Source: Monocercomonoides exilis PA203
Lineage: Eukaryota > Protista > Preaxostyla
Direction: 5' to 3'
NCBI GenBank assembly: GCA_001643675.2
Contig: LSRY02000014.1
Location: 1,054,001-1,118,000 of the forward strand
Length of the DNA stretch: 64,000 nucleotides
The notes below the pieces were generated by a model that did no database searches, was not told the DNA's origin, and saw nothing but the letters and a program-made list of their open reading frames with translations. The position numbers and the translations under genes are program-made. Numbering within the stretch: the stretch's first letter is position 1; each line of letters opens with the position of its first letter. Below are positions 9,914 through 31,670 of the stretch, piece by piece.

Positions 9914-10172
9914 TATATATTTCATTCTGTGATTTCATATGATGGATAATGAATTAAAAACAGGTAAACAAGTTCATGAAAAGAAAAATGTGATTTTAAC
10001 CGAAACTGATAAAAATCAAATCATTTATATTCGGTTTTCATTCAGTTTAAAAACTCTGTGAATTTGAAGTCACAAGCTCAACTTAGAAAAGACTCCGTTT
10101 CTAGTCGGGGAGGAAACTCGGGCCAGGGAGGAAACCCGGGCCTCACCCATAGTTTGATTTTTGTGATCTCTA

Positions 10173-11544
10173 ATGAAAAAAACAATAAATTCTGCATCAA
10201 GACTTTGCGCAACTGCTGAAATTCGTGAGTTGGAAGATGCACACTTGAAGGCAATTTACTTACACAACATCCTGAACATTCCAACGAGAGAAATTGCCCG
10301 AAGCCAGGAACTTTCTCGCTCTTCAGTGCAAAGAGCTCTCGCCGCAGAAAAAAAAAGGAATACACCTGGAAAATCTGGAAGACCAACTCAATTTGACAAT
10401 TCGGACGAACAGTATTTAACAACAGTGATAATTCATGATGCAGAGCATGGAACGTTTCATTCAAAAATGGAAATTACACAAATGGTTTGTATTTCGCTAA
10501 TTATTATTTGTTTAATTTTTTTTTATAATTCAGGCTAATGATTTGCTAAAAACAAAGAGAAAAGAAGGAGATGAAGTCAAAACGGTTGACAAACATTGGG
10601 TGAAGCGATTTTTGAAAAGGCATATTGAAATTAGTCTTGCGAAACCAATTGCTTTGCCTTTAGGGAGAGCAGCCCACACTTCGAAATATACAATCGTCCC
10701 CTTCTTTGACGAAGTGAAGAAATTGTTTGAAAGTGTCAATCCAATTCCACAGCTATTGTTTAACTTAGATGAAACTTCCACTTTTTCATCCAAACAACAA
10801 CCTGAACTTGTTGCTTCTTCATCCTCAACGCCTTCTGCAGTTGTTCCTGAAGTTCACTTGCCAACTTCGACTTCAATAATCTTCATGACAAGTGCAGACG
10901 GGTGTCGATATTTGACACCCATATTAATTCCATTTTCAACGCTTCCAGAAGAATACAAGCTAGGAACAACTTCGCACGAAGTGTTCATTCCTTCTTTATC
11001 TGGTCATGTGACATCAGCAATTTTTTTGGACTTGTTCAAAAAGTGCGTAATCACAGAAATTAGAAATAAAAGAATTGCAGTGGGAAAGAGAGAAAAGCAT
11101 GCCGTCCTCATTATGGACGGTGGAGTGGGACATTTTCAGACGGAAATTCTTCAATTATGCAAGGATAATTTAATTGATCTTGTAAAACTTCCATCACATA
11201 CTTCACACATTTTGCAGCCTAATGATCAATACATCTTCGCAAGTGTGAAAAGGGTGTTCGGAAAAGCCAAAGAAAGCGGAACAACAACCTCAGCATCATC
11301 AAAGAGAGAAATATTTATTGAAATCCTAAGAAATGGACTTGCCGCCGCTTCGTATCCAGAAACTATAAAATCTTCTTGGAAAAGCACAGGGTTATGGCCA
11401 TTTAACCCGGAGAAGATTTTTTCAAATCTTCCTGATAATCCTCCAGAATGGGCATCACCTGGAGTTGAACCCAAATCTGCACCAATGGGATCTTCATTTG
11501 GAGCTGTTTATTATTCTTCTGATGATTTATCTGATTTGTTCTGA
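10173..11544 (+). CDS. DDE_1 (pogo/Fot1/CENP-B-like) transposase, DD35D, 2 exons (10173-10484, 10534-11544), ~440 aa
   Basis: N-terminal HTH (TREIARSQELSRSSVQRAL..GRP), WVKRFLKRH, and triad FNLDETS / LIMDG / LQPND with 35 residues between the last two Asp. Intron GTTTGT..TTCAG at 10485-10533 is phase 0. Confidence 0.9.
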
Positions 11545-11628
11545 AGACATTTTATTTTTTATTCCATATCATTGCAGCTTTTTTGGAATGCACAGCTTTT
11601 ATATATAAGTTAAATATCTTTATCTTTA

Positions 11629-12078
11629 CAGTCTAAACCGGATATAATCACGTCGAATATAAGCACATTCGTATATTATCACATTTTTGAGTGCAAGAAC
11701 ATTTTTGTCCAATTTTTCATTCATTTTTCATCACATATAATCACAGGCCTGAAAATATATAATCACATTTTGTTTCATAATGGGTAAATTTTTCATTGAA
11801 AAATCGATTTTTTGATCAAAATTTTCAATTTTTCGCTTTTTCAAAAACATGCTCAAATAAGTTTAAATAATGTGTATTTATGAAAAAAATTGATTTCGCA
11901 AATGAAAAAAGTGTATTTGGATAGAATTTCCAAAAATAAAAAAATCGACTCTAAATTAATTCGTTTGATAACTAATTTTTATTTTTTTCTGTGGAAAGCA
12001 TCATCGTGTATAATCACAATCGGATATAGTCACAAAAAGTTGTGCAAAAACCGATGTGATTATATCCGGTTTGGACTG
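11629..12078. mobile_element. 450-bp Tc1/mariner-type MITE nested in the 3' end of the pogo element
   Basis: TA|CAGTCTAAACCGGATATAATCACGTCG ... CGATGTGATTATATCCGGTTTGGACTG|TA, with subterminal TATAATCAC repeats. Confidence 0.88.
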
Positions 12079-12203
12079 TACTGTTTTTCTTTGTTTCAGT
12101 TCATGAAATGAAATACAAACACTAAAAAAGGAAAAATAAAAAAATTCCCATTTTAATATCAATGGCCCGGGTTTCCTCCCCGGCCCGGGTTTAGTCCCCC
12201 ACT

Positions 12204-13169
12204 AGAACTTGATTGAATTGACTGCGTCAAGTGGCATTAGATCGGTCAACATCCAATAAGATCGATCTAATGCCATTAAGAGTCAGTCAAATTGGATGTG
12301 ACTCAGTCTCATCCGATCATTTCCATTCTGGGCGTCATGATCAAAATATTTATGAAAAAATTTGTAATAAAAATTAATAATTAACATCTCATTTTATATC
12401 ATTTTAATTGAATATAATGATTTTTCATTTAAAATAGTTTTTTATTTAGTAAGTTTCTTTTAATAATTGACATTTCACGGAAAAACCTGGAAATTCTAAT
12501 TGTTTTTGTTTGATAATGATTATTGGTGAATTATAAAAATGATATAAGTAAATTTCATTTCATTTTTCAATATTAAGAACAAGTTTCATTTGTTTTTTTC
12601 ATTTCATTAAAATTTTCAGAAAAAGAAAAAATACAAAAAAAGAAGCTTTAGAATCATAACTTCTTTTTATTTTTTATTCGAAATGAAAAAATATCAAATA
12701 ATGATTGATTATTAAACACATAACAGTTAAGAAAACACAAAAAAGTATAATTGTTTATAAATATTGAAAATCAACAAAAAAATGATATAAAAATGTTTGT
12801 TGTTCAAAACATAAACAAATTTGGTTCAATTTCAACATTAAAAGTTAACAACAAAGTCACAATTGCGAAATTTGAAAGTTTCAAAAAACCAGAATCAAAA
12901 TAAGAAAACAACAAAAACATAGTTAATTTCGAAATATTCATATAAAAAATAAAAACATTTAAAAAGTTCAACGTTCATGAGCTTTCAATAGTAAAAATAT
13001 AAACAAAACAAAAAAATGTTCGATCACAATTCGTGATCATAAAAATTATAATTTCGCCCTTGGTGAGATTGAGGGAAATTCGATTAAAAATAGAGAAATT
13101 CGAGAAACCAGACATAAATCGATTTGACTGAGTCACATTTTCGCGACTCAGTCAAATCAATAAAGTTCT
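12204..13169 (+). mobile_element. Non-autonomous PHIS-type element, unit A (966 bp)
   Basis: TIRs AGAACTTGATTGAATTGACTGCGTC / GACTCAGTCAAATCAATAAAGTTCT, with ACT on both sides. Repeated GACTNAGTC motifs and an AT-rich interior without an ORF. Confidence 0.85.
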
Positions 13170-13172
13170 ACT

Positions 13173-15511
13173 AGAACCTTTTGTATTTTATTTGATGCAT
13201 CCGCAAAAGATATATAAACACTTTATAATATCGATTGAAAACCGAATAGAATCAAACTTATTTGATTTGATTCAATAACATTCATATTCACAAATGTTGG
13301 TTTCGTGATCATTAATAACAAAATTTCAATATTTGGTTTTGATCAAACGAAAGTTGTTCTAATTTTTTTCTGATGTCACATTCAAATTTTTTGGACGTTT
13401 TGAAGAGTGTGGAGAGGAGAAATATTATTCCACAACGGAATGAATCACTTCAAAAGGAAGAAAAAATTTCCATCATCAAAAAAGCTTGTGACTTTTTTGA
13501 TGATCCTGTTTCTTCTTTTTTTCGACTTACTGGATTCACAAAAGAAGAATTTGATTTTCTCATTCACATTCTTCAAATGGAAGTTCCTCATCGTCGAGGG
13601 AAACTGAAAGCAATCAACAATTTTGATGAACAGTTATTCTTGTTACTCACTTTTCTTCATCACGGTTCAACAACACTCACACTTTTATTATCCACACCTT
13701 TCTATGAAACTCAAAACGCTCTTGTCAGACTTCTTCACAGTATTGTTTCTCATATCAGAGCTCCATTAGCAGATTTGTTTTTGACATTTCGCCCTGACAG
13801 GATTGAAGTGATGAAGGAGGTTGGAATTGTTTTGGACTGTACAATCATTCCCATCAACAGACCTGGAGGTCGATTAGACTTTGGGAAAAAGTTTTTTAGT
13901 GGGAAACATCACACATATTGTGTGAAAGCTGAGGTTGGATTCAATCCCATAGTTGGGACAGCAAGTACTATCAGTGCAATTCATTCTGGCTCCACTCATG
14001 ACTTTACAGTCTTTAAAGATCATTATCCTCAATTTTTGGATCGTTTGGGAGGGGCAAAAATATTGGCTGATTCGGCTTACATAGGAGCGAGACCTGATTT
14101 GGCTGCAATTATCACCAAACCAGTGGGAACACCAGAGCTAGCAACTCATCGAGTTATCGTGGAACGGTTTTTCGGTCGTCTGAAGACCCTCTTTTCAGTT
14201 TTTAGAAGACAGTGGCCATTTGAAGTTGAAAGGGTTGCTGATTATTTCTGTGTGGCTTGTTGTTTGACCAATTTTCATATATTACGAAATCCATTGACAA
14301 GAGCAGATGGGGAAGCAAATCAGCGTATTTTGGACAACTTGTGGACGGAGCATTTACAAAAACAAAAAGCAAGACAAATAGCGAATGAGAGATATCGAAT
14401 AAAATTGAAAAATAGATTGAATCCGAGCTTGTCAATTACACCCACAATAACTTCTTTAAAGGCACAAATAGACAGTTTATTATTCATTACTTTACCCATA
14501 TTTATATTCTTTATCATTTATTTGATTTTTTTTGATAACTCTTTCAACCATTATATTTTCTCTTTTTTTTTTATTCAGATATTTCACAGAATGAAAAGGA
14601 AGGCGCACTGAAAAAGAAATGTGAAGAAGAAAAGAAAGAAAAGCGAAAAATCGAAGAAAAAGAAGAAAAAGAAGAAAAAGAAGAAAAAGATAGAAATGAA
14701 ACGAAAAGGATTGATTTGGAAGAAAATGATAGTGACGAAGATGATAATTCTATGGCCTGGTGTTTTCCAGGTCAGTGGAAATCAATCCAACATTCTTCTG
14801 CATCTTCTTCATCTCCTTTTCCTTCAACTCCACGTTCATCAGAAGCAGAAAAGGCGAAAAGAATTACGCCAAGTCCTTTAAGGCTTCTTTTGGAACAAAG
14901 AAATTAGTTTTTTCTTTTATTATTTCTATTTTTCAATCATTCACCTTTTTTTAAAAAAAAAAATAAAAGAGAATAAAAAATATAACTTATTGTATGTATG
15001 TCATAAAATATTTATGAAAAATATTGAAATGAAACAAAAATCGTTGTTTCCCCTTGAGTTTTATATGAAATAAACGTTGAAAAAGTATTATTAATGATCC
15101 TGATTTAAAATAAAACGTCACAGCTGTTAATAGCTTAAAACATATGAAAATAATCATAAGAATTAATAAAAATGCTCAATCGCAAGGATATCATGTGAAA
15201 GAATTAAAAATAAATGCAAACCTTTTGAACTATAAAAAAACTCAAAATTTGCTGAAAACAGATCAAAACACCGTGGATTTTATATAGATGCATAAAATAT
15301 AAAAGTTTTGTGAATAATCGAAACGAAGGAATCACATAAAATAAGAAACAAAAAAATAATAAGATCAGTTTTTCAAACATTTCGTAATTCCTATTTTGGA
15401 CCAAGTGAGATTGAGACAGTTCCAATATGATTGAATCAATTCCAAAAAAAGAGGTTGACATCTATGTTATAAAATCAAATTTATTTTTTGCTCAAGATTC
15501 GAAAAACGTCT
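13173..15511 (+). mobile_element. Autonomous PHIS (PIF/Harbinger-like) element, unit B (2339 bp)
   Basis: AGA...TCT ends flanked by ACT and ATT. Shares TGATCA 133 nt from the left end and AGATTGAG 103 nt from the right end with units A and C. Contains the transposase. Confidence 0.8.
13373..14907 (+). CDS. DDE_Tnp_4 (Harbinger/ISL2EU/IS5-like) transposase, 2 exons (13373-14474, 14579-14907), ~476 aa
   Basis: Motifs FRLTG, IVLDCTIIPINRP, FSGKHHTYCVK, GSTHDFTVF, ILADSAYIG, RVIVERFFGRLK. Intron GTTTAT..TTCAG at 14475-14578 joins in frame to the K/E-rich tail of ORF 14716-14907. Confidence 0.9.
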
Positions 15512-15514
15512 ATT

Positions 15515-16506
15515 AGAACTAAAACGAAATGACTCAGTAATGCGGTATTCGATTTGACTAATACCAATAAGTGAAATATAAAACCAAAAAGTGAGACTCA
15601 AAACCGTTTTGATTGAGTCAAGACCAATTGATTCAATTCTGGGTGCATGATCAATAGAAAGTTTCACAAATTAAGTTGTTCATATCTTTCAATATTTAAA
15701 GAATAAATGAATTATATTATATATATATTAAAATGTGAACGTTTTTTAATTAAAAAAACGAAAGATTCTATGTTTTGATTTTTTCAAAATTCTTTATTCA
15801 ATATTAATTTTTTGTTTTAACAAATTTTTCATTAAAAACATTTTGTTTTTTATATTTTGTTAAATTTTGATTGATTTGAAGAAAAAAATTCAATGATCAA
15901 AAAAGAATTGGAAACATACAACGAAATTTAAAAAAACAGAAAAAACAATGATAGAAATTCGAATTGAAAAATTTTTCAACCACTTATCATTTAATCAATT
16001 CTTTTCTTTATAAAAAATAAAAAAGATAGATTATAAAGTTCATAATTCAGACAAAGTTTTATGAAAAAACAATAGTTCAATAAATAACATCCTTTCAAAA
16101 TAAAACTGAAACAAAACCAACGAAATAATAAATACTAACTTCATAATTAAAACAATAAATAACAGTTTGAACATAAGAAACTTATTATTAAATCAAAAAT
16201 AACTTAAAAAACTTGTTTCAAAAATTTCGATGAATTTTTCATGATCTTAAAAAAACTTAACGCAAATATATTAAGAATACATTAATGATACACATATCAA
16301 AAAATTAATAAAAGCAAACTGCTCTGTGACAGAAAACACAAAAAACTTCAAATAATTATGATCAAAATTGATACATAACTTTTGTATTTTTGATCACAAA
16401 AAAGATTGAGGGAAAACCGAATTGATTGAGTCAAAACCATTAAAAAAGACACAAAACGTTTAGACTTAATCAATTCGAATTGACCCGCTCAATTCGTTTA
16501 AGGTCT
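15515..16506 (+). mobile_element. Non-autonomous PHIS-type element, unit C (992 bp)
   Basis: Imperfect TIRs AGAACTAAAACGAAATGACTCAGT / ACCCGCTCAATTCGTTTAAGGTCT, with ATT on both sides. Same positional motifs as A and B, plus TTGATTGAGTCAA repeats. Confidence 0.82.
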
Positions 16507-16509
16507 ATT

Positions 16510-16517
16510 TTCAACAA
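16510..16517 (+). promoter_or_regulatory. TTCAACAA 5' leader of tRNA-Asp, putative Pol III initiation element
   Basis: The identical 8-mer lies immediately 5' of tRNA-Lys (4827-4834, minus strand). Confidence 0.55.
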
Positions 16518-16589
16518 GTCCGCTTAGTATAGTCGGTAGAATATGAGACTGTCACTCTCATGGCCCGGGTTCAATTCCCGGAGTGGACG
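16518..16589 (+). tRNA. tRNA-Asp (GTC)
   Basis: Acceptor stem GTCCGCT/AGTGGAC+G, anticodon arm TGAGA-CTGTCAC-TCTCA, T arm CCGGG-TTCAATT-CCCGG, and a T6 terminator directly downstream. Confidence 0.95.
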
Positions 16590-16846
16590 AATTTTTTGTT
16601 GTTTTTTGAAGTTGATTTATCTTTTTTTTATCATTTTCAGATAATTGAAGAATAACAATTGAAGTCTATAAAAAGATGATATGGCTATATATATATATTT
16701 TAATTGGCTATGAACATTTCTTCAAAATATCGAGAAAGATTTATGTATTTATTTGATTCATATTTATTCAAGAAAAGTTATTTTATTTTAAAAACTTCAA
16801 ATTTCCGTTCTGTTTGTTATGCTTTCTATGCTCATCGTTGTGGATT

Positions 16847-22583: not shown

Positions 22584-25500
22584 TCACTGCTCTTTCATCT
22601 CCTGCTTTTCTGTCTTCTTTGTTGCCTCTGATGTGATCTCAAAAACTGTCGAATAGCCTTCTTCCCCACTCGCAAGACTGCCTTCCCCCTCTCTCGTGCT
22701 CCCCCCATCCCTTTCACAGATCGCGTCAGACATCGTCACAATCACAGCCCCTGCAGGGAAATGCCCATAAAACTCCCGCTTCATCTCGTTCAGTGTCGGA
22801 CGATCATTCCAGTCCTTTCCCATCGATGACCAAACAAGCTCATACAGTTCACTCCCTCGGATCTTCTCAACATTCGGCCTCTCTCCTTTCGATATCTTGT
22901 CTCCTGCCACCTCTGACTCATACTCCCCAAATGGGATATCCAGTGTCAGACACTCCCACACCATCATTCCAATCGAGAATGAAACTGACTCCTTTGTTGC
23001 TCCCATCTTCTTGTTCATCTGCAGCTCGGGTGCCTTCCACCTCAAACACTCCTTCCTGTTGTCTTCACAATCCTCAAACGCTGATGAAGGTGGTGGTGAG
23101 TCGGTGAATCTCTCGCTCATCACTGAAACATTCGATGAGGATGAAGAAACAATGGACATCGAACAGATGGATGATGAATCGGAATCATCTGAAGATGAGC
23201 AGTCAGAGTGGAGGGCAACGCAGATCACCATGTGCTCTGAGAACAGCACAATGTGAGGACTCAGATTGGCCAGCGATGGCAATTCCTTTTCTTCATCAAA
23301 TGAGTGGAGCGCTCCATTCGCCACCCAGAACAGGATCTGTGCAGCTGTCTGCTCCCTCTCCTTCAAACTCCCAATCGCCATCTCCTTCTTCGCATTCTTT
23401 CCGTGCAGCAGCATGAACAGCGAATCCCTCAGATCAACAATCAGCTTCTCATGAGGCGATGAGCAGGCCATTGCATCCAGCAGATTCGACATCGATGAGG
23501 TGGTTGGACACAGATCCTCCCCTCGAACAAATGATGAATCTGAATCATTAGAAGTTGTTGAAGTGGATGAAATTGATGGTGATGGAGTCTGCTTTCTTAT
23601 TTCCTCTTCTTCAACCTTCTCCAGAGCCCATTCTGGAATCTTGTCTGAGTCTCTCCCCAGAATATATTCTGTGGAACCACTCTCACTCAATAAATGCTCT
23701 GATGACTCCGAGTGTCCCAAGCTTTTCTCATACACCCTCTTCTTTATCCTCTCCTCATTCTTCTTCTCTGCCTCCCTCTCGGCTCTCCTCCACTGCGCCT
23801 CAGGTGACATCTCCATCGTCACCATCTCAAATGCCTTTGGATCTTTTCTGATGTTATCATTCACAATCTCTCTCAGATCTTCTGCTTCATTCTTCACCTT
23901 CTTCCACCGGACAATGAATATAATGGATATAATTAACAGTATTACTACAATCGCAATGCATACAATTAATGCCCATGAGAATTTTCCTTCTTTCCCTCCT
24001 TCAACAATTCTGTCATCTCCTTTTCCTTGGGTTTCGCTTCTGTTCTTCAGAATAAATGAGTCAGTCGATGAAGGAGAATCATCTTTTCCAAACAAAATGC
24101 ACACAGATATTTCTGTCTCTGCTCCCGCTGCTTCCATCTGAACCGATGAAACAACTGCAACAATTTCATTCTCTGACACACTTTCCTTTTCACTAATCCC
24201 ATAGTTCTCGATCACCTCTTCCATTCCATTTCTGAAGCTCAACTTCAACGAAACATTGCAGGGGAGAAGAAGTCTCCCACTCAGCGTGATGATTGTTCTT
24301 CCCTCAGATTCCGTCTCATTCCTCGCCTCTTCCACAACTGGGATGAACAGTGGTGATGCTCTCTCCTCAATCATCCCGCTCAATTCACATCCTTCATCCA
24401 GAATCCACAAGGATGTGTTTCTTTCCCATCCGTCTCCTCCTTTCAAACTCATCACATTCAACACTCCAGAATCTGAACAGAGAATATTTCTTCTGATTGA
24501 AGGATATTTTTCTATTGATGGGTTGTTGTTCATAAATTCTCCTTTCTCAACAGTCACAGATCCTCCACAAATAGAAAGACTTCCATCAAAGCTGTTCACA
24601 AAACTCGTATCCTTTATCTCCGCTGTGCTCTCCTTTGCCTCAGCAACTGACCCATTCCATTTGCACACATCCAACTCCTCATTCAATTCCTTTTTTCTTT
24701 CTTCCTTTCCATCAAACAAGCACTGCTTCATCTGAATATTATTGCACATCAAAAGAGATATCATCTTCCCTTTCTTTCTTCTCGATGAACACCCACCAAA
24801 CGAACAGTTCGAAAACTCCACATTTCCTTCCATCCCCTCAACATCAACCACACCTGTACTCTCATCTTCACATGTGATGTTGTCAAACGAAGACGACAAA
24901 ATGGAAAACGAAAACTCACTTTTTTCTCTGTTGCTCATATCAACTTCATCTCCATTCACCTTAACCAACCATCCTTTTCCCATCCTCACATCTCTTGCTT
25001 CCATTTTTTCTATCTTCACATTCTCAGCTCCACTGATCTTCATGAAGTCTTTGTTTGCCTCAATATTTCTGAGTGTCAATCCATTCACTTCAGTATCCTC
25101 TTCCATTATCATGGCAGCTTCTCTCAAAAATGAAATCCACATAACACTCACATTCCCCACTAAGCATTTTCCCCTTTCCACAAATATCAAGCAAAATGGC
25201 ACTTCCACCATTTCCCTCTCAGCCAAGCTCACTCCCTCAAACGAACACATGCTGATCGATGTCTTTCCCGAACTTATCTTCATGAATGATGAATGTGCGA
25301 CTGGTTTTTGATTTGTTTCAACTTCTTCAAAAGCAAATTGAATCCATCGAACATATACCTGCCCATTTGTCTCCACAATCATCTCTTTGCTGCAGTTCAT
25401 TCTCCCTTTCACAACCACTCGACTCTGCACTTCATGCATCCCGCTCAGTGTGAGTGTCTCCAATCCAATTTCCTCATCAATCACTGACTCTTCATCAACA

Positions 25501-28500
25501 AACACCTGGCTGAAGAAATCGTATGTCAGGTGCCTCAGCCCAAACCCAATCGTAGCACATGGCAACAAGGGCTTCCCACACTGCTGCTCATTGCTTCCCC
25601 CTTTCCCTTCTTTGCTCGACACCACAATCGTGTCTGACTGGTATTTCACAATCAGACTCATCAAGTCCATCGCCTCCTCCTTGTGCTCTCCTGCATCCAT
25701 CCCATAGATCGCATTCTGCCTGATGAACTCCACATCACGGAAGTCGATGTTGAACTGTGTTTCGTTGATCTGCCTCTCGATGCAGTCACACACAATGAAC
25801 ATATCATTCCCGATGAATGCTGTGTTCCTTCGGAATATCACCTTATCAAACACATAATCCAACTCTCCCTTCAGTTCGGTCTTCAGATACACCCCGCCTC
25901 CTTTGCCTTCGCTCACTGAGCATCCACACTGCTTCACACTCGTGTTCACAACATGGAACAATCCTCCTTCATTCAACTCAAACAGCATCGCCCCTCCCTT
26001 TGTGCTTCTCCCACAACTGCACCCTTCAACCAGTGAATCTTCAACAACAAGCGTCACTCCACTTCCACTCTTGCTCGAAATAACACTCGGATCAACTCCT
26101 TCCCCTTCAACTGCTCCAATACTGCAATTCTTCATCCTCATCTCACCTCCTCCATTTGTTCCCTCTCCTTCAATTTCAAACAGACTCCCACTTTCCAATG
26201 TAGCTTTTGTGACTGTGAATTCGTCAATCACACTCACAACTTCTCCACTCTCCACAAACACACTTCTCTTCCCAAAATATGAAAGCACTTTGAACATCAT
26301 CATCGCCAACTCCCCTTTCTTCACAACACAAAATGCAACATCCCCCATCCCTTCTCTCTTTCCTTTCCATGAGATTGAACAATCTTCCCATTCAACTTTC
26401 CCTCCCTCACTCACAATCATCCCTGATTCTCCATTTCCCAAAACATTCATCACACACATCTCCAGTGCTCTCAGAGTGACTGCTCCACTGTTGCGAAGAC
26501 ACACATTTGCTCCACTTTCTCCATCACTCCCAAACACAACTGTTCCATATTCCATCTCTTCGTATCCTGCTCCCACTGATTCCACTTCAAACCCACTCAA
26601 ATCATGTTTCCCCTCCACTCTTATCTTTTCTTTCACTCTCACCACTTTTCTCTCTCCTCCTCTCTCAATGTGCTTCAATCCCATCTCCAATGTCTCACAT
26701 GGATCCTCTTCACTCCCACATCGAACGACATCATCTCCCTTTTCCCACACCACAATCCTCTCGCTCCTGTATTCAATCACAAATCGCAACAGATCCGTGT
26801 TTGTCCGCTTCTCATCACTTCCAACAAACAGATTCTGATCATCTTCCATCCCTTCAACATCAATCGCAAATATCTCGCTCCTCACTGTCACATTCAGATC
26901 TGAATCCAAAATGAACATGTTCTTCCCCATAAATGCCTCATTCTCAGCAAACTTCACTCCCTCAAACTTGAATGGTATTCCTCCCCTCCTTTCGCTGCAA
27001 TTCACATTCAGCCATCCTCCTTTCCCGCTTTTCACCTTCTCTGCTGAGCATCTTTCCATCATCCCTTCTTTCACATAAATCATCCCTGAATCAAGGATAT
27101 TCACCCTCACTGCCCCTCCACTCATGCTCTCTCCTCCTGTGATGCCACTCATGTTGCTCTGTTCTATCTTCATCACTTTCCTCACCTCTTCACATATCAC
27201 AGCTGACTCATCTCCACCAACAACATACAAACTTCCAAATGAGCAGTTGCTAATGCTCACAATTTCACCCTCTGCTCCATTCTGTTCCATCCCAAGAAGT
27301 GCAAGATCCATCAGACTCTTTTTTATCTTGATATTATTTATTGATATCCACTCCATCCTCACAGCTTGTCCACTGCTCCTGATGATTCTATATTCAATCG
27401 CCTCTTCTTCCCCTTCCTGCATCTCAAACGAACACAATTCCATCTCCAAAACACCATTTGCTGTTGATGAGCTTATCACCACATCCTTCCTCTGTTCAAA
27501 GGATCCAGGCAATTCAAATCCAACATTCACAAACACACTCAATCCCTTCGAATCAAGAACACTTCCTCCTCCTCCTTCAATTCCTTTCTCCACAACAACT
27601 TTCTTTTTCTTGTTGTCTTTCCCTTCAATCCAAATACCATTCACATCTCCCACCTTCTCAACACTCGTGCTCCCACTTATCACTATTTTCTTTTCTCCCT
27701 CTCCACCAAGCCTTCCAATTCCATAATCCACACTCCTGCACGGACAATTCTCCATCCCACACCAGATTCCATTGTCTCCATTCTCACTCTCCACCTCAAT
27801 GATCGACGAGCTGTATCCATCAATGAATATGAACAGATCAACCTCACTCACAAACTTCTGTCTATCCATCCCCATCAGAGAATTCTCTCTCTCACTTATC
27901 CTTTCACTGAAAGAGAAACTGCTTCCATTCACAACCCTCCTCAAATCATCACACACAACATACACATCCTTCCCACACCTTGCTCTGTTCTCTTCAAACC
28001 TCACTCCTCTCATATCAAACCCATATCTCTCTCCTTCAATCCCTACCCACATCCCTCCTCCACATCCTCCTCCATTCGTTGTCCCTTCCAGTCCAGCCAA
28101 ACATTTCTTCATCAACGTCACTTCTTCTTCACTCCTGATCTTCAGTTGTGCATCCCCTTTCAATTCCACTTTCATCCCTCCTCCATTCCCTTTCTCTGCC
28201 ACACAACCATCAACACTCGTGTTCCACACATCCACCATGCCTCCTTCTCCAATCACTCCGCTCATTATCCCTCCATCACCTTCACTCACTCGAACATTGC
28301 TCCCATTGCATCCCCAAATGGATATCTCCTTTGCTTCACTCCCTTTTATCGCCCTTGAATCAACAAAATTACACGAACTCCACTTGCATTCACTCATCCG
28401 AACAATACAATTGCTCCCTGCCAAAATCAAACTGTTTCTTCCCACTTCGCACCCACTGACAATCACACCTTCTCCTGTGAGTGTGCTTCCTTCCTCACAA

Positions 28501-31500
28501 ACAACAAATCCTGTTTCTCCTTCAAAGGTCATATCATTCAGCTCCACATTCTTCAACGAGACAGATGATAATCCTCCATTCGCTTTTATCACAGGCTTCC
28601 CGAACCTCATTGAATCCAATCTCAGTGAGGTCACATTCGCTTCTCCCTTTTCCACAACAATCAAATTGTATTCCACAAAATTCTCTCCAACTCCAAATCC
28701 AACAATGCATTCGCTCAAGTTCAGTGTTTCTCCTTTCAACTGGAATATTGCTTCATGATGTCCAAGAACAGATGGCATCATCAGCCCAATCTTCCTCATC
28801 CTTGTTTCCTTCAGCACCACAAATACTCCAACGCATCCTTCCTCATCACCTTTGCAACTTGCCTCACCTTCAACAACAAACGATCCATCATCTCCTGTTC
28901 CTTCAATCACCCTTGCCATTTTCGAAAACGCCACTGTTGAGCTGACCTCAACTCCATTCCCAATTTTGATTGTTGCTGTTGTTGTTCCATCTGCTGGTGT
29001 GCTTTCTTCCCTCTCAATCGGACAGTTCAGTGTTCGGCACTCGAAAAATGTGTGTCCGCACATTGGATGATCTGCCCCTGAAGCCGAAACATAGATCTCA
29101 CTCCTTGGAACATCCAGAAGATAGCACACAATCGGAATCACCAGTGTCACATTGTTTGTGTCTCCCTCTCCCTCCACTTCATGAACATCTTCACTCAAAT
29201 GTGAAACAAATCCATATCTCCCTTTCGGAATTAACTCCAGCTGATTCGAGGCAATAAACACATTCACTCCATGAACAGCTAGATTATTTTCAAATCCCAC
29301 ATTCACAATCTCAAACACAACTGATGGAGATAACAGCTCCAAATATATCCCTCCTCCTCTTCCCTTCTCCTCTCCATTTCCCTTCTCTGCCACACATTCT
29401 CCAATCTCTGTTGCAACATTTCCTCTGCCAATCTTGAATATCCCGCTTTGACCAACCTTCCATGCAATAACACCCCCATTCCCCTCCTTACACACACAGT
29501 TTCTGAATGTGGTGTTCTCCAGCTCCCATGAATCGCTTCTCTCACTTTCAGTGCTGAATATCACCCCATCCCCTCTCATCCGACAGATCCTTTGGATTGT
29601 CACATTTCCCAGCATCCCTCTCCCAACTCCACTATCCTCCTCTTCCTCCAACAAAGAGCAATCTCCAAGACCAATATCCTCAATCAAACAGTTTTCCATC
29701 TTCACTTTCTCAAATATCACTTTGAACGGTGAAACATCAAATGTGTGACTCTGCCCATCTTCTGCCCCTGATATGATCACATTTTTTAGTGTCAGTTTCT
29801 GTGCTCCTGTTTGGATCGCAAACAATGAACACGATGATTCTTCACTGTTGTGATGAATCGTCACCAAAGACAATCCCATCGATCCCGAATCCAATGTGAA
29901 CAAACACTCATGAGAATCCAACAATTTTGTGGAAATGACACACTCGCTCTCGCTTTCGCCTTTGAACGAAATATCTCCCCCTCCAATGAATAAGGCAGTT
30001 GAAGAATATATCGATCGAAGAATGTTCACAGTTCCCTCTGCTCCTTTCTCAATCATGTTGTATGCCTGCTCAATCGTGTTGCATGGGCTGGTCTGTGTTG
30101 CCCCACAGACTGGCCCTGTAATTCCATCTATTCTGGCATATGTTATTTTGATTGTTGGAAGCCATGCATCGTAATCTGTCTGACTGTTATTGTAAAATAC
30201 TCTCTTTGAGGGGGTTGTTGAGAACGACGACTCAAATGGCGAACCTTTCAAAAAATAGTTTTTGATTTTAACATCATGGCCTTCTTCATTTTCAGCCTTG
30301 TTTCCGGTGAAAAAGCAAAATGATATCAATTTTGGAGGTGGTTCAGTTTCCATCCAACTTGTTGTTCTCAAGAAAATACCCCCACCTCCTCCTTCATAAT
30401 CAGATGTTCCAGTTCCATTTGCCAAATTTCCATCAAATTCACATTCAGAGATTAAATATAAATTCGGATGGTATTCCATATATAATCCTCCACAAAATGA
30501 TCCTGCTTCATTACAAATAAATTTACAATTTCTAATTGTCCCATTTTCTTTTCCAGAAAGCTGATGAATACGTAATCCTCCTGCGTAGTTTACTCTAGCT
30601 TTGCATTCGCAAAAAATGCATTCGGAAAAAAAATAATCTCCGTTTAGCATATAAATTATCATTCCACCTGTGTTATCATCTGCCATGCAATTTGTGAAAT
30701 TGCTGCCAGATATTATCACACCTGCTGCTGATTGAACATCAACAGCTCCATCGTGATGATGACTCATATTCATGAATGAGCATCTTTCACATTCAAGAGT
30801 TGTATTTCCATACAAAAAAATAGCGCTTCCAACTCCAACATATCCCGTTTGATACCATTCGCAATCTGTGAAAGAATGTGTTTCATTTGCTCCCAGTTCC
30901 TGCCTTGTCATATTGCGTCCGCCTGATTCATCCACATTCATCGTTCGAAAGCAGCACTCAAATGAGGAGTTTGTTGCTCTCAACGAAGCACATGGGCTGT
31001 TCACCGATCTCAAAATACCCCCATCAATAACATCCCAAACTCTGAAAAAAGAGCAGCCCTCAATCGTTGTTTCTGTTCTCGCTCTCAAATCCATTTCTCT
31101 TTGTGCTCCCGTAACAACAGAAATGTTTGCCATCATCAGATGAGATGCTTTCACATTGCAACTAACATTCGGCGCTAAAAATATTACTGATATCAGTTCA
31201 AATGATGAAAACGAAGAATCGGAAAGGAAGATTTCTCCAATTCTATTGTTGAAGTTCTTTGGCAAGGACGAGCAAAAAAGTCTGGGAATACGAGCAAATG
31301 GCCTGAATGTGAAGGTAGAAAGATTCACAGAATAGATGCTTCCTTCATCAAGAGCAAATGGGCTATTTTTTGATGAAAATGAAATCGTATATTCTTTGAT
31401 GTTCAAATGTCCTCTCTTGCAAACAAAAAAACATGGTTTTCTTTCGAAATGCCACTGCAAAATATTTGAGGCACTCAGAGATGAATTCATCACTTGAAAT

Positions 31501-31670
31501 TTCGAGAGAATTGAACTGTATTGAAGAATTTGCTGCGCTCTGAAATTATTGTTGAACTGTTGTAATTGCAGCATAACTGTTGCGTCCAATTGGTTTATTT
31601 CTTTGCCCAACAATTCTTTTGAGCTAAAAATCGCAAAGACGCTTGCAATAATCGAAAATATCAGATTCAT
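22584..31670 (-). CDS. 3028-aa receptor-like surface protein: signal peptide, pectin-lyase-like beta-helix repeats, TM helix, degenerate TKL-like kinase domain
   Basis: Single ORF with a hydrophobic N-terminus, repeated C-x-A-x-x-x-GG(G)-hydrophobic and CG-x4-PC-x-T/S modules, TM WALIVCIAIVVILLIISIIFIVRWKK, and kinase remnants LRWKAPEL, SFSIGMMVWECLT..PF, RPTL. Confidence 0.85.
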   Translation of the reverse strand: MNLIFSIIASVFAIFSSKELLGKEINQLDATVMLQLQQFNNNFRAQQILQYSSILSKFQVMNSSLSASNILQWHFERKPCFFVCKRGHLNIKEYTISFSSKNSPFALDEGSIYSVNLSTFTFRPFARIPRLFCSSLPKNFNNRIGEIFLSDSSFSSFELISVIFLAPNVSCNVKASHLMMANISVVTGAQREMDLRARTETTIEGCSFFRVWDVIDGGILRSVNSPCASLRATNSSFECCFRTMNVDESGGRNMTRQELGANETHSFTDCEWYQTGYVGVGSAIFLYGNTTLECERCSFMNMSHHHDGAVDVQSAAGVIISGSNFTNCMADDNTGGMIIYMLNGDYFFSECIFCECKARVNYAGGLRIHQLSGKENGTIRNCKFICNEAGSFCGGLYMEYHPNLYLISECEFDGNLANGTGTSDYEGGGGGIFLRTTSWMETEPPPKLISFCFFTGNKAENEEGHDVKIKNYFLKGSPFESSFSTTPSKRVFYNNSQTDYDAWLPTIKITYARIDGITGPVCGATQTSPCNTIEQAYNMIEKGAEGTVNILRSIYSSTALFIGGGDISFKGESESECVISTKLLDSHECLFTLDSGSMGLSLVTIHHNSEESSCSLFAIQTGAQKLTLKNVIISGAEDGQSHTFDVSPFKVIFEKVKMENCLIEDIGLGDCSLLEEEEDSGVGRGMLGNVTIQRICRMRGDGVIFSTESERSDSWELENTTFRNCVCKEGNGGVIAWKVGQSGIFKIGRGNVATEIGECVAEKGNGEEKGRGGGIYLELLSPSVVFEIVNVGFENNLAVHGVNVFIASNQLELIPKGRYGFVSHLSEDVHEVEGEGDTNNVTLVIPIVCYLLDVPRSEIYVSASGADHPMCGHTFFECRTLNCPIEREESTPADGTTTATIKIGNGVEVSSTVAFSKMARVIEGTGDDGSFVVEGEASCKGDEEGCVGVFVVLKETRMRKIGLMMPSVLGHHEAIFQLKGETLNLSECIVGFGVGENFVEYNLIVVEKGEANVTSLRLDSMRFGKPVIKANGGLSSVSLKNVELNDMTFEGETGFVVCEEGSTLTGEGVIVSGCEVGRNSLILAGSNCIVRMSECKWSSCNFVDSRAIKGSEAKEISIWGCNGSNVRVSEGDGGIMSGVIGEGGMVDVWNTSVDGCVAEKGNGGGMKVELKGDAQLKIRSEEEVTLMKKCLAGLEGTTNGGGCGGGMWVGIEGERYGFDMRGVRFEENRARCGKDVYVVCDDLRRVVNGSSFSFSERISERENSLMGMDRQKFVSEVDLFIFIDGYSSSIIEVESENGDNGIWCGMENCPCRSVDYGIGRLGGEGEKKIVISGSTSVEKVGDVNGIWIEGKDNKKKKVVVEKGIEGGGGSVLDSKGLSVFVNVGFELPGSFEQRKDVVISSSTANGVLEMELCSFEMQEGEEEAIEYRIIRSSGQAVRMEWISINNIKIKKSLMDLALLGMEQNGAEGEIVSISNCSFGSLYVVGGDESAVICEEVRKVMKIEQSNMSGITGGESMSGGAVRVNILDSGMIYVKEGMMERCSAEKVKSGKGGWLNVNCSERRGGIPFKFEGVKFAENEAFMGKNMFILDSDLNVTVRSEIFAIDVEGMEDDQNLFVGSDEKRTNTDLLRFVIEYRSERIVVWEKGDDVVRCGSEEDPCETLEMGLKHIERGGERKVVRVKEKIRVEGKHDLSGFEVESVGAGYEEMEYGTVVFGSDGESGANVCLRNSGAVTLRALEMCVMNVLGNGESGMIVSEGGKVEWEDCSISWKGKREGMGDVAFCVVKKGELAMMMFKVLSYFGKRSVFVESGEVVSVIDEFTVTKATLESGSLFEIEGEGTNGGGEMRMKNCSIGAVEGEGVDPSVISSKSGSGVTLVVEDSLVEGCSCGRSTKGGAMLFELNEGGLFHVVNTSVKQCGCSVSEGKGGGVYLKTELKGELDYVFDKVIFRRNTAFIGNDMFIVCDCIERQINETQFNIDFRDVEFIRQNAIYGMDAGEHKEEAMDLMSLIVKYQSDTIVVSSKEGKGGSNEQQCGKPLLPCATIGFGLRHLTYDFFSQVFVDEESVIDEEIGLETLTLSGMHEVQSRVVVKGRMNCSKEMIVETNGQVYVRWIQFAFEEVETNQKPVAHSSFMKISSGKTSISMCSFEGVSLAEREMVEVPFCLIFVERGKCLVGNVSVMWISFLREAAMIMEEDTEVNGLTLRNIEANKDFMKISGAENVKIEKMEARDVRMGKGWLVKVNGDEVDMSNREKSEFSFSILSSSFDNITCEDESTGVVDVEGMEGNVEFSNCSFGGCSSRRKKGKMISLLMCNNIQMKQCLFDGKEERKKELNEELDVCKWNGSVAEAKESTAEIKDTSFVNSFDGSLSICGGSVTVEKGEFMNNNPSIEKYPSIRRNILCSDSGVLNVMSLKGGDGWERNTSLWILDEGCELSGMIEERASPLFIPVVEEARNETESEGRTIITLSGRLLLPCNVSLKLSFRNGMEEVIENYGISEKESVSENEIVAVVSSVQMEAAGAETEISVCILFGKDDSPSSTDSFILKNRSETQGKGDDRIVEGGKEGKFSWALIVCIAIVVILLIISIIFIVRWKKVKNEAEDLREIVNDNIRKDPKAFEMVTMEMSPEAQWRRAEREAEKKNEERIKKRVYEKSLGHSESSEHLLSESGSTEYILGRDSDKIPEWALEKVEEEEIRKQTPSPSISSTSTTSNDSDSSFVRGEDLCPTTSSMSNLLDAMACSSPHEKLIVDLRDSLFMLLHGKNAKKEMAIGSLKEREQTAAQILFWVANGALHSFDEEKELPSLANLSPHIVLFSEHMVICVALHSDCSSSDDSDSSSICSMSIVSSSSSNVSVMSERFTDSPPPSSAFEDCEDNRKECLRWKAPELQMNKKMGATKESVSFSIGMMVWECLTLDIPFGEYESEVAGDKISKGERPNVEKIRGSELYELVWSSMGKDWNDRPTLNEMKREFYGHFPAGAVIVTMSDAICERDGGSTREGEGSLASGEEGYSTVFEITSEATKKTEKQEMKEQ

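Follow-up and report, generated by a model that had tools for sequence, protein, structure and literature searches.

Head-to-tail arrays of a Pangu-like DNA transposon family immediately upstream of tRNA genes in Monocercomonoides exilis

How do three strongly diverged transposable elements come to stand head to tail, parted by single base triplets and ending a few nucleotides ahead of an intact tRNA gene? The question is raised by a 64,000-nt stretch of the Monocercomonoides exilis PA203 genome (assembly GCA_001643675.2, contig LSRY02000014.1, positions 1,054,001 to 1,118,000 of the forward strand), hereafter the window, in which such an array lies directly upstream of a tRNA-Asp gene. Our favoured answer, to which we assign a probability of roughly 75%, is that the elements belong to a cut-and-paste, Pangu-like family of the PHIS superfamily, which targets A-N-T triplets upstream of tRNA genes and stacks by using the same triplet again. 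The answer is built on the anatomy of the array, the target duplication, the genome-wide adjacency to tRNA genes, the orientation bias and the mixing of subfamilies within arrays, each of which we observe in the assembly.

The array ahead of tRNA-Asp

The array and its target comprise the following features (window coordinates, basis in brackets).

12201..12203, forward strand: ACT triplet, left copy of the target duplication (sequence read)
12204..13169, forward strand: unit A, a 966-bp non-autonomous element (end comparison, genome copies)
13170..13172, forward strand: ACT junction triplet (sequence, end models)
13173..15511, forward strand: unit B, a 2339-bp autonomous element of a young subfamily (transposase and end matches)
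15512..15514, forward strand: ATT junction triplet (sequence, end models)
15515..16506, forward strand: unit C, a 992-bp non-autonomous element (end comparison)
16507..16509, forward strand: ATT triplet, tRNA-proximal copy of the target duplication (sequence, end models)
16510..16517, forward strand: native 8-nt leader TTCAACAA (fits the genome tRNA upstream consensus TTCAASAA)
16518..16589, forward strand: tRNA-Asp(gtc) gene (ARAGORN)
16593-16598, forward strand: T-run terminator 3′ of tRNA-Asp (sequence)

Units A, B and C follow one another head to tail in one orientation, with a single ACT or ATT triplet between neighbours, and the last element end lies 11 nt before the 5′ end of tRNA-Asp. 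Each unit starts with AGAAC; the 3′ ends read GTTCT, CGTCT and GGTCT, respectively, that is, TCT preceded by G or T. Two internal landmarks keep their distance from the ends: TGATCA begins 133–134 nt past each 5′ end (12338, 13306 and 15648), and AGATTGAG begins exactly 103 nt ahead of each 3′ end (13066, 15408 and 16403). The first-pass annotation of this DNA, made from the letters alone, had proposed the three units, their ANT triplets and the 11-nt gap, and this layout proves exact to the base when set against the sequence and the ARAGORN call; the AGA starts, the TCT ends, the common orientation and the two end motifs (TGATCA at +133, AGATTGAG at -103) that it listed are likewise present in all three units. 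It had further argued that the units are too diverged for a recent tandem duplication, which is borne out, since the ends of A, B and C are mutually only ~60–65% identical. A chance layout is excluded by ~30 further junctions of the type 3′ end, 3 nt, 5′ end found at other loci with the same end models. Finally, the tRNA leader is left intact, as had been supposed: TTCAACAA equals the native sequence ahead of tRNA genes in this genome, the consensus of which is roughly AAAAATTTYYTTTTTCAASAA followed by the tRNA.

The units differ in coding capacity. Unit B has five other copies at 96–97% protein identity. Unit A is represented by ~25 full-length genomic copies (69–92% identity), with its first 140 nt sharing 91–93% identity with an autonomous subfamily at the 5′ end, and the ends of unit C match those of autonomous copies with transposases 66–72% identical to that of B. 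Judged by these sequence matches, A and C are derivatives of the miniature inverted-repeat transposable element (MITE) type.

tRNA genes border the arrays across the genome

We searched the genome (82,301,135 bases, 101 contigs; a single assembly of a single strain) and scored at least 101 transposase copies from 255 candidates; tRNA distances were counted on a sample of 63 scored tRNAs out of ~3339 Rfam candidates. Element ends were analysed with profile models of the 5′ and 3′ ends on the 30 best loci with 1.5-kb flanks, and the tRNA side was sampled through the 3 kb upstream of 40 high-scoring tRNA genes. All 13 visible tRNA-proximal array ends at transposase-centred loci adjoin either a tRNA-type gene (10) or a pogo-like element, X (3), and not one of the 13 borders on unique DNA. 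The proximal borders are as follows.

Window: tRNA-Asp
L003: tRNA-Val
L006: tRNA-Ser
L011: tRNA-Asn
L013: tRNA-Thr
L027: tRNA-Leu
L017 and L022: Lys-type genes with an 8-nt intron
L015: degenerate tRNA-like gene with A box, B box and terminator
L021: tRNA-Phe, facing the 5′ end of an inverted unit
L002, L024 and L026: pogo-like X after 5–9 nt

At L002 a tRNA lies directly behind the bordering X. The tRNA-like genes beside L015, L017 and L022 gave no Rfam match at the gathering threshold; ARAGORN, with introns allowed, calls a tRNA at L017 and L022 but not at L015. The two Lys-type genes occupy L017:3645-3725 and L022:487-567, and the L017 copy carries the anticodon TTA (‘Stop’ by ARAGORN), making it a mutated copy or possibly an ochre-suppressor-like gene.

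The gap between element end and tRNA is 5–12 nt, which places the triplet between -3 and -11, and in 13 of 14 cases it is the element's 3′ end that is turned toward the tRNA. The strand relationship is equally one-sided when read from the transposase: for nine transposase hits, a tRNA from the scored set of 63 lies 0–11 kb downstream, in every case on the strand of the transposase (~0.43 expected, P ~1e-9), with no strand rule among the upstream tRNA neighbours. Seen from the tRNA side, family ends lie 5–7 nt upstream of tRNA-Gln (L050/L051), tRNA-Arg (L057/L058) and tRNA-Thr (L066), and an old family end lies ~12 nt upstream of tRNA-Lys (L041); this amounts to four independent loci among the 40 sampled tRNAs with a family end within 12 nt upstream, and among the same 40 no family end was found downstream. 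The family is, in other words, found at a short, defined distance upstream of tRNA genes far above chance. The targeted tRNAs represent many isoacceptor types and share no common leader sequence. The enrichment upstream of tRNAs anticipated by the first-pass annotation is accordingly real, and the comparison of transposase and end matches with tRNA calls that it had suggested, here run on the ARAGORN and Rfam sample, finds copies that are not scattered. Its idea of a single fixed insertion position needs dividing: it is sound within a locus, where the triplet is used repeatedly, and fails across loci, where the gap ranges from 5 to 12 nt instead of being 11.

The arrays themselves are regular. 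Many transposase copies follow one another on the same strand at intervals of ~2.3 kb (contigs C62, C22, C1 and C11 provide examples), and adjoining transposase open reading frames (ORFs) are on one strand in 29 of 32 pairs (two-sided binomial, 3e-6). At the 30 best loci we count ~30 head-to-tail junctions and a single tail-to-tail one. About 85% of junctions measure exactly 3 nt, a spacing accounted for by repeated integration into a regenerated triplet; a few have a 6-nt gap made of two adjacent triplets, which fits the use of the next triplet. Arrays combine subfamilies only ~60% identical, and short-read contigs hold the pairings X-B, A-C and B-B over the same 3-nt junction, as well as X-ACT-ATATG-CAA-tRNA-Asp with the array absent. 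Given such mixing and so many pairings across one type of junction, tandem duplication cannot explain the arrays. The A-B pair recurs at L003, and composite movement or recombination may contribute to arrays.

The triplet behaves as a target duplication. A solo A-type unit at L066, the distal flank of which is unique DNA, is enclosed by a clean AAT/AAT duplication, as is the L027 unit, and the inverted unit of L021 stands between AGT and AGT. Read in the orientation of the tRNA, the L021 triplet is ACT, which suggests that triplet polarity is a property of the site and not of the element. Across 45 distinct junctions, the triplet following the 3′ end is A-N-T in 40 (ACT 26, AAT 6, ATT 4, AGT 4).

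We therefore favour, at the probability given above, a mechanism in which the family would integrate into an A-N-T triplet 2–8 nt ahead of the mature tRNA 5′ end, at or near the expected start of RNA polymerase III (Pol III) transcription, with the element 3′ end nearly always directed at the tRNA. By recreating that triplet next to the tRNA, each insertion would provide a target for further ones of any subfamily, whether autonomous or MITE-like, and older copies would be displaced outward. The expected outcome is a head-to-tail array with exactly one triplet between units, the internal promoter and leader of the tRNA remaining intact. By analogy with Ty3, the site may be chosen through contact of the transposase, perhaps of its conserved C-terminal tail, with the Pol III pre-initiation complex; an alternative cue, again as for Ty3, could be distorted DNA near the Pol III start. 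The gap differs by 7 nt between genes, and Pol III start sites also vary from gene to gene.

The upstream regions themselves show a common pattern. In 27 non-redundant regions (L031–L070) we find AAAAA at -21 to -17, a T-rich segment at -16 to -7 and CAASAA at -6 to -1, a pattern reminiscent of the CAA and A/T-rich elements that precede plant tRNA genes. With some of the element 3′ ends (GAAAAACGTCT), an A-run would come to lie near the native -21 to -17 position. These ends could mimic the native A-rich box, though GAAAAACGTCT occurs in some subfamilies only and is part of the terminal inverted repeat (TIR).

Neighbouring families and competing explanations

The tRNA-distal border of the window array is formed by X, which had escaped the first-pass annotation.

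~10104..12202, forward strand: pogo-like element X, 2.1 kb, with TIRs GTCGGGGAGGAAAC... and ...GGGTTTAGTCCCCCAC, flanked by TA (TIR matches at 10103 and 12187-12203)
10543-11544, forward strand: X transposase ORF of the DDE_1 type (PF03184, E 2.5e-11)

X supplies the AC of the window's ACT target triplet, and the common ACT triplet in general consists of the final two bases of X followed by the T from the TA duplication of X; in arrays that lack X, AAT is the usual triplet. In the window, the base after the final ATT is T, where the A of X's TA would be expected from the pre-insertion site. X is itself an upstream-targeting family: solo X ends lie 8–9 nt upstream of tRNA-Thr genes at L047 and L068, with the X ORF in either orientation. 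Of 58 X-family transposases, 38 have a Harbinger-like copy within 10 kb; for distant pogo-like transposases (≤28% identity), which serve as an internal control, the count near arrays is 0 of 41. A further repeat family, Y, ends 8–10 nt upstream of tRNA-Lys (L043/L044) and tRNA-Arg (L056) and borders one array, L015 (2909-2940). Since X and Y ends also lie just upstream of tRNAs, at least three repeat families (Pangu-like, X and Y) occupy the tRNA-upstream niche. The X TIRs (window, L047, L068, L002, L024 and L026) consist of two tandem motifs such as GGCCCGGGTTTCCTCCCCGG, similar to the T-arm or B box of a tRNA (cf. GGCCCGGGTTCAATTCCCGG of the adjacent tRNA-Asp). Copies of Y share ~2 kb of sequence at 85% identity and end in ...GGGAATTATTCCCGGGTATTTGACACGC followed by TA; a Pfam search of the Y ORFs gave no match.

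The frequent presence of X lends itself to the main rival explanation, namely that integration takes place beside the terminus of an existing element, of the same family or X, so that the link to tRNAs is inherited from X or from rare seeding and growth may occur at any junction. An X-type end is found on the distal side of 12 of 18 arrays, as compared to 2 of the 40 sampled tRNAs without arrays; the make-up of ACT, the prevalence of exact 3-nt junctions and the co-clustering of X-family transposases with arrays all agree with this explanation. Set against it are solo or first insertions at tRNAs with a unique or non-X distal flank (L066, L015 behind Y, and the distal-most unit of L007), as well as the L027 unit, which used the AAT one triplet past the end of X and nearer the tRNA. 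Furthermore, every proximal border consists of a tRNA or of X, the latter backed by a tRNA where this was checked, no distal border is a tRNA, and a relative in another organism (L076, see below) adjoins a tRNA directly. We consider targeting of resident ends an unlikely sole cause of the arrays.

Less probable by some distance is a process with no active targeting, in which elements hit ANT triplets at random, selection retains the harmless copies upstream of tRNAs, and arrays arise by unequal crossing-over or segmental duplication. Pairs of tRNA genes with identical upstream sequence are numerous (L050/L051, L057/L058, L043/L044, L048/L049, L062/L063 and L038/L039); several of them are inverted (divergent), <1 to ~20 kb apart and include the upstream elements, which points to segmental inverted duplication of tRNA-plus-element units. 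The inverted pairs L050/L051 and L057/L058, the second occurrence of the A-B pair at L003 and the coincidence of transposable element islands with low gene density (PMC8767320) speak for such a process. Selection, however, cannot yield placement within 5–12 nt, a 13 of 14 orientation bias, or 0 of 13 array ends in unique intergenic DNA within a genome consisting of 46% repeats; adjoining units come from subfamilies only ~60% identical, and junction partners are freely shuffled; we hold selective retention to be very unlikely. An artefact, with dispersed repeats collapsed or mis-joined in the Nanopore assembly, scarcely merits belief: although the short contigs of the public runs (four runs, one sample) include none that spans the array, dozens of loci, spread over more than 20 contigs, share the junction grammar, each with a tRNA and flanks of its own, independent short-read contigs hold the junction types (from paralogous loci), and the array measures only 4.3 kb, well within Nanopore read length.

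Several observations do weigh against tRNA targeting with stacking at the proximal triplet. The counts come from a partial sample of copies (101 of 255) and tRNAs (63 of ~3300) over 70 loci, and no insertion event or empty allele was observed in the one strain and one assembly. With X distal in two thirds of arrays (12/18) and the commonest triplet, ACT, derived from the X terminus, resident element ends may help to define the target. The order within arrays is suggestive only: young B copies (96–97% protein identity to the window B) rank 1–3 from the tRNA, an 88%-identical B-like copy ranks sixth of seven on C1, and an order in which the proximal unit is the newest, with growth at the tRNA-proximal end alone, is weakly supported. 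Lastly, three relatives from Blattamonas nauphoetae (~32% identity) lack both an adjacent tRNA and clear TIRs.

Transposase, relatives and known systems

The transposase of unit B is predicted to be encoded in two exons.

13373..14474, forward strand: transposase exon 1, encoding the DDE_Tnp_4 catalytic domain (D155, D233, E264) (Pfam, alignment; end inferred from the GT at 14475)
14475..14578, forward strand: putative 104-nt intron, GT...AG (sequence)
14579..14907, forward strand: putative transposase exon 2, a charged tail with [SA]W.LP.QW[KR]S (motif conservation)

The unit B ORF (13373-14611) matches PF13359 DDE_Tnp_4 with E 1e-19 and 71 bits (cut-off 24.8), and D155, D233 and E264 are kept in an alignment of 12 relatives. 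The break in the reading frame of B falls inside the putative intron and exon 2 restores the frame, so that a splice at 14475-14578 would join the two exons; other transposase copies read straight through this region, and the annotated M. exilis protein P0005 has the tail motif downstream of its catalytic domain. Intact copies have a single ORF of ~476–533 aa including the tail, and the only second same-strand ORF of at least 70 aa found in them is a 92-aa overlapping one in L006. The tail motif [SA]W.LP.QW[KR]S is preserved between subfamilies only ~60% identical, making the exon-2 tail a candidate tether, localisation or regulatory segment. In the tail (14579-14907 and its equivalents), FP and P..L..LL near the C-terminus are also kept across subfamilies, and these motifs are embedded in otherwise low-complexity acidic, serine-rich sequence. 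The nearest database proteins are annotated as M. exilis ‘putative DDE superfamily endonuclease’; the sequence search for a relative of solved structure found none.

The family 5′ ends are nearly all AGAAC or AGACC, with a few degenerate exceptions. Together with the DDE_Tnp_4-type catalytic domain, the AGAAC.../...GTTCT TIRs and the 3-bp duplication agree with the PHIS (Harbinger-superfamily) identity put forward by the first-pass annotation. Canonical PIF/Harbinger elements have a TWA duplication and a second, Myb/SANT ORF (PMC4482050); here the triplets are ANT, not TWA, and no such ORF is present. A 5′-ANT-3′ duplication, which the first-pass annotation had named as the mark of Pangu, does define that group, its TIRs usually starting with AG or GG, and two ORFs are usual in autonomous Pangu elements without being defining (PMC4482050); our intact copies are single-ORF. 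On the strength of the A-N-T duplication, the AG-starting AGAAC...GTTCT TIRs and the IS5/Harbinger-type DDE domain, we would class the A/B/C family as a Pangu-like member of PHIS. Outside oxymonads, the closest named relatives are DDE_Tnp_4 proteins of Phytophthora, and a Phytophthora ‘Harbinger’ family sits in the Pangu clade (PMC4482050), which may be taken as a hint of a link to that clade and as nothing firmer.

An exhaustive protein search returned 608 relatives at E ≤0.001. One, on a Logan contig from another organism (L076), encodes a 34%-identical transposase and has an AGACC... end 5 nt from the 5′ end of a tRNA-Asp, in inverted orientation; this tRNA-Asp and its M. exilis counterpart are nearly identical. 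Another, on an ENA metagenome contig of 2834 bp (L074), is a 36%-identical protein of 681 aa between the termini AGAAC...GGTCT, with an X-like TIR, CCGCCCCGGGTTAACCCCGG, ~100 nt past its 3′ end, and the Harbinger-like and X families may thus travel together in another organism. For a relative from a GC-rich metagenome (L075), the TIRs are long and no tRNA is present.

To insert at a defined position ahead of tRNA genes is a textbook safe-harbour strategy, known among eukaryotes from retrotransposons. Ty3 (a long terminal repeat retrotransposon of Saccharomyces), DGLT-A and TRE5-A of Dictyostelium and Tj1 of S. japonicus resemble the present family in inserting position-specifically, a few nucleotides upstream of tRNA genes near the Pol III start; the tRNA gene stays intact, and the safe-harbour logic suits a gene-dense genome. 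For Ty3, integration occurs 0–20 bp upstream and requires promoter competence (PMC7175516). These are, however, retroelements that rely on an integrase or on target-primed reverse transcription, whereas the present family has a cut-and-paste DDE transposase, a 3-bp duplication, TIRs and MITE-like derivatives and, unlike the Ty3-type elements, builds exact head-to-tail arrays with one triplet in common. Pangu is alike in its IS5/Harbinger-type DDE_Tnp_4 transposase, 3-bp ANT duplication and short AG-starting TIRs, but the Pangu paper reports no target preference beyond ANT, as compared to a tRNA-upstream window of ~9 nt with an orientation bias here, and Pangu elements average ~3.5 kb with mostly two ORFs, as compared to ~2.3 kb and one putatively spliced ORF (PMC4482050). 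PIF/Harbinger elements with their Tourist MITEs share the transposase superfamily, the 3-bp duplication and the mobilisation of MITE-like derivatives by autonomous elements, and differ in the TWA duplication and the Myb/SANT ORF, neither of which was found here (PMC4482050). According to the abstracts describing it, Dada, a superfamily of its own, is a DNA transposon likewise specific for multicopy Pol III-type small RNA genes including tRNA genes, but one that inserts into them (PMC3706591; PMC8869645); here insertion is upstream of an intact tRNA and the transposase is of the DDE_Tnp_4 type.

In a literature search with partial journal coverage, such that an earlier description is possible, targeting upstream of tRNA genes was reported only for retrotransposons, and the only tRNA-specific DNA transposon group found was Dada, inserting into genes. 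What appears to be new here is a cut-and-paste DNA transposon with a tRNA-upstream habit so far known from retrotransposons, the same niche being reached convergently by different transposition chemistries. That a DDE transposase of ~480 aa should choose a 9-nt window in a preferred orientation makes tethering between transposase and transcription complex directly testable, and the family is a possible starting point for site-directed integration tools. It also accounts for part of the ‘unclassified’ repeat islands of M. exilis: the paper on the PA203 Nanopore assembly puts repeats at 46%, most of them unclassified, and makes no mention of tRNA genes (PMC8767320). On a broader proposal we are evenly divided, namely that a guild of unrelated DNA transposons (Pangu-like, X and Y) has converged on the Pol III start region, with the Pangu-like family docking in an orientation-specific manner through a transposase segment on TFIIIB/TFIIIC, and that this is conserved in at least one other oxymonad-like organism; if true, it would provide the first cut-and-paste counterpart of Ty3.

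Elsewhere in the window, an ORF at 39-2588 encodes a bifunctional aldehyde/alcohol dehydrogenase of the ADHE type, and a 3028-aa intronless ORF at 22584-31670 has a C-terminal protein kinase domain, which fits the expanded tyrosine-kinase families reported for M. exilis.

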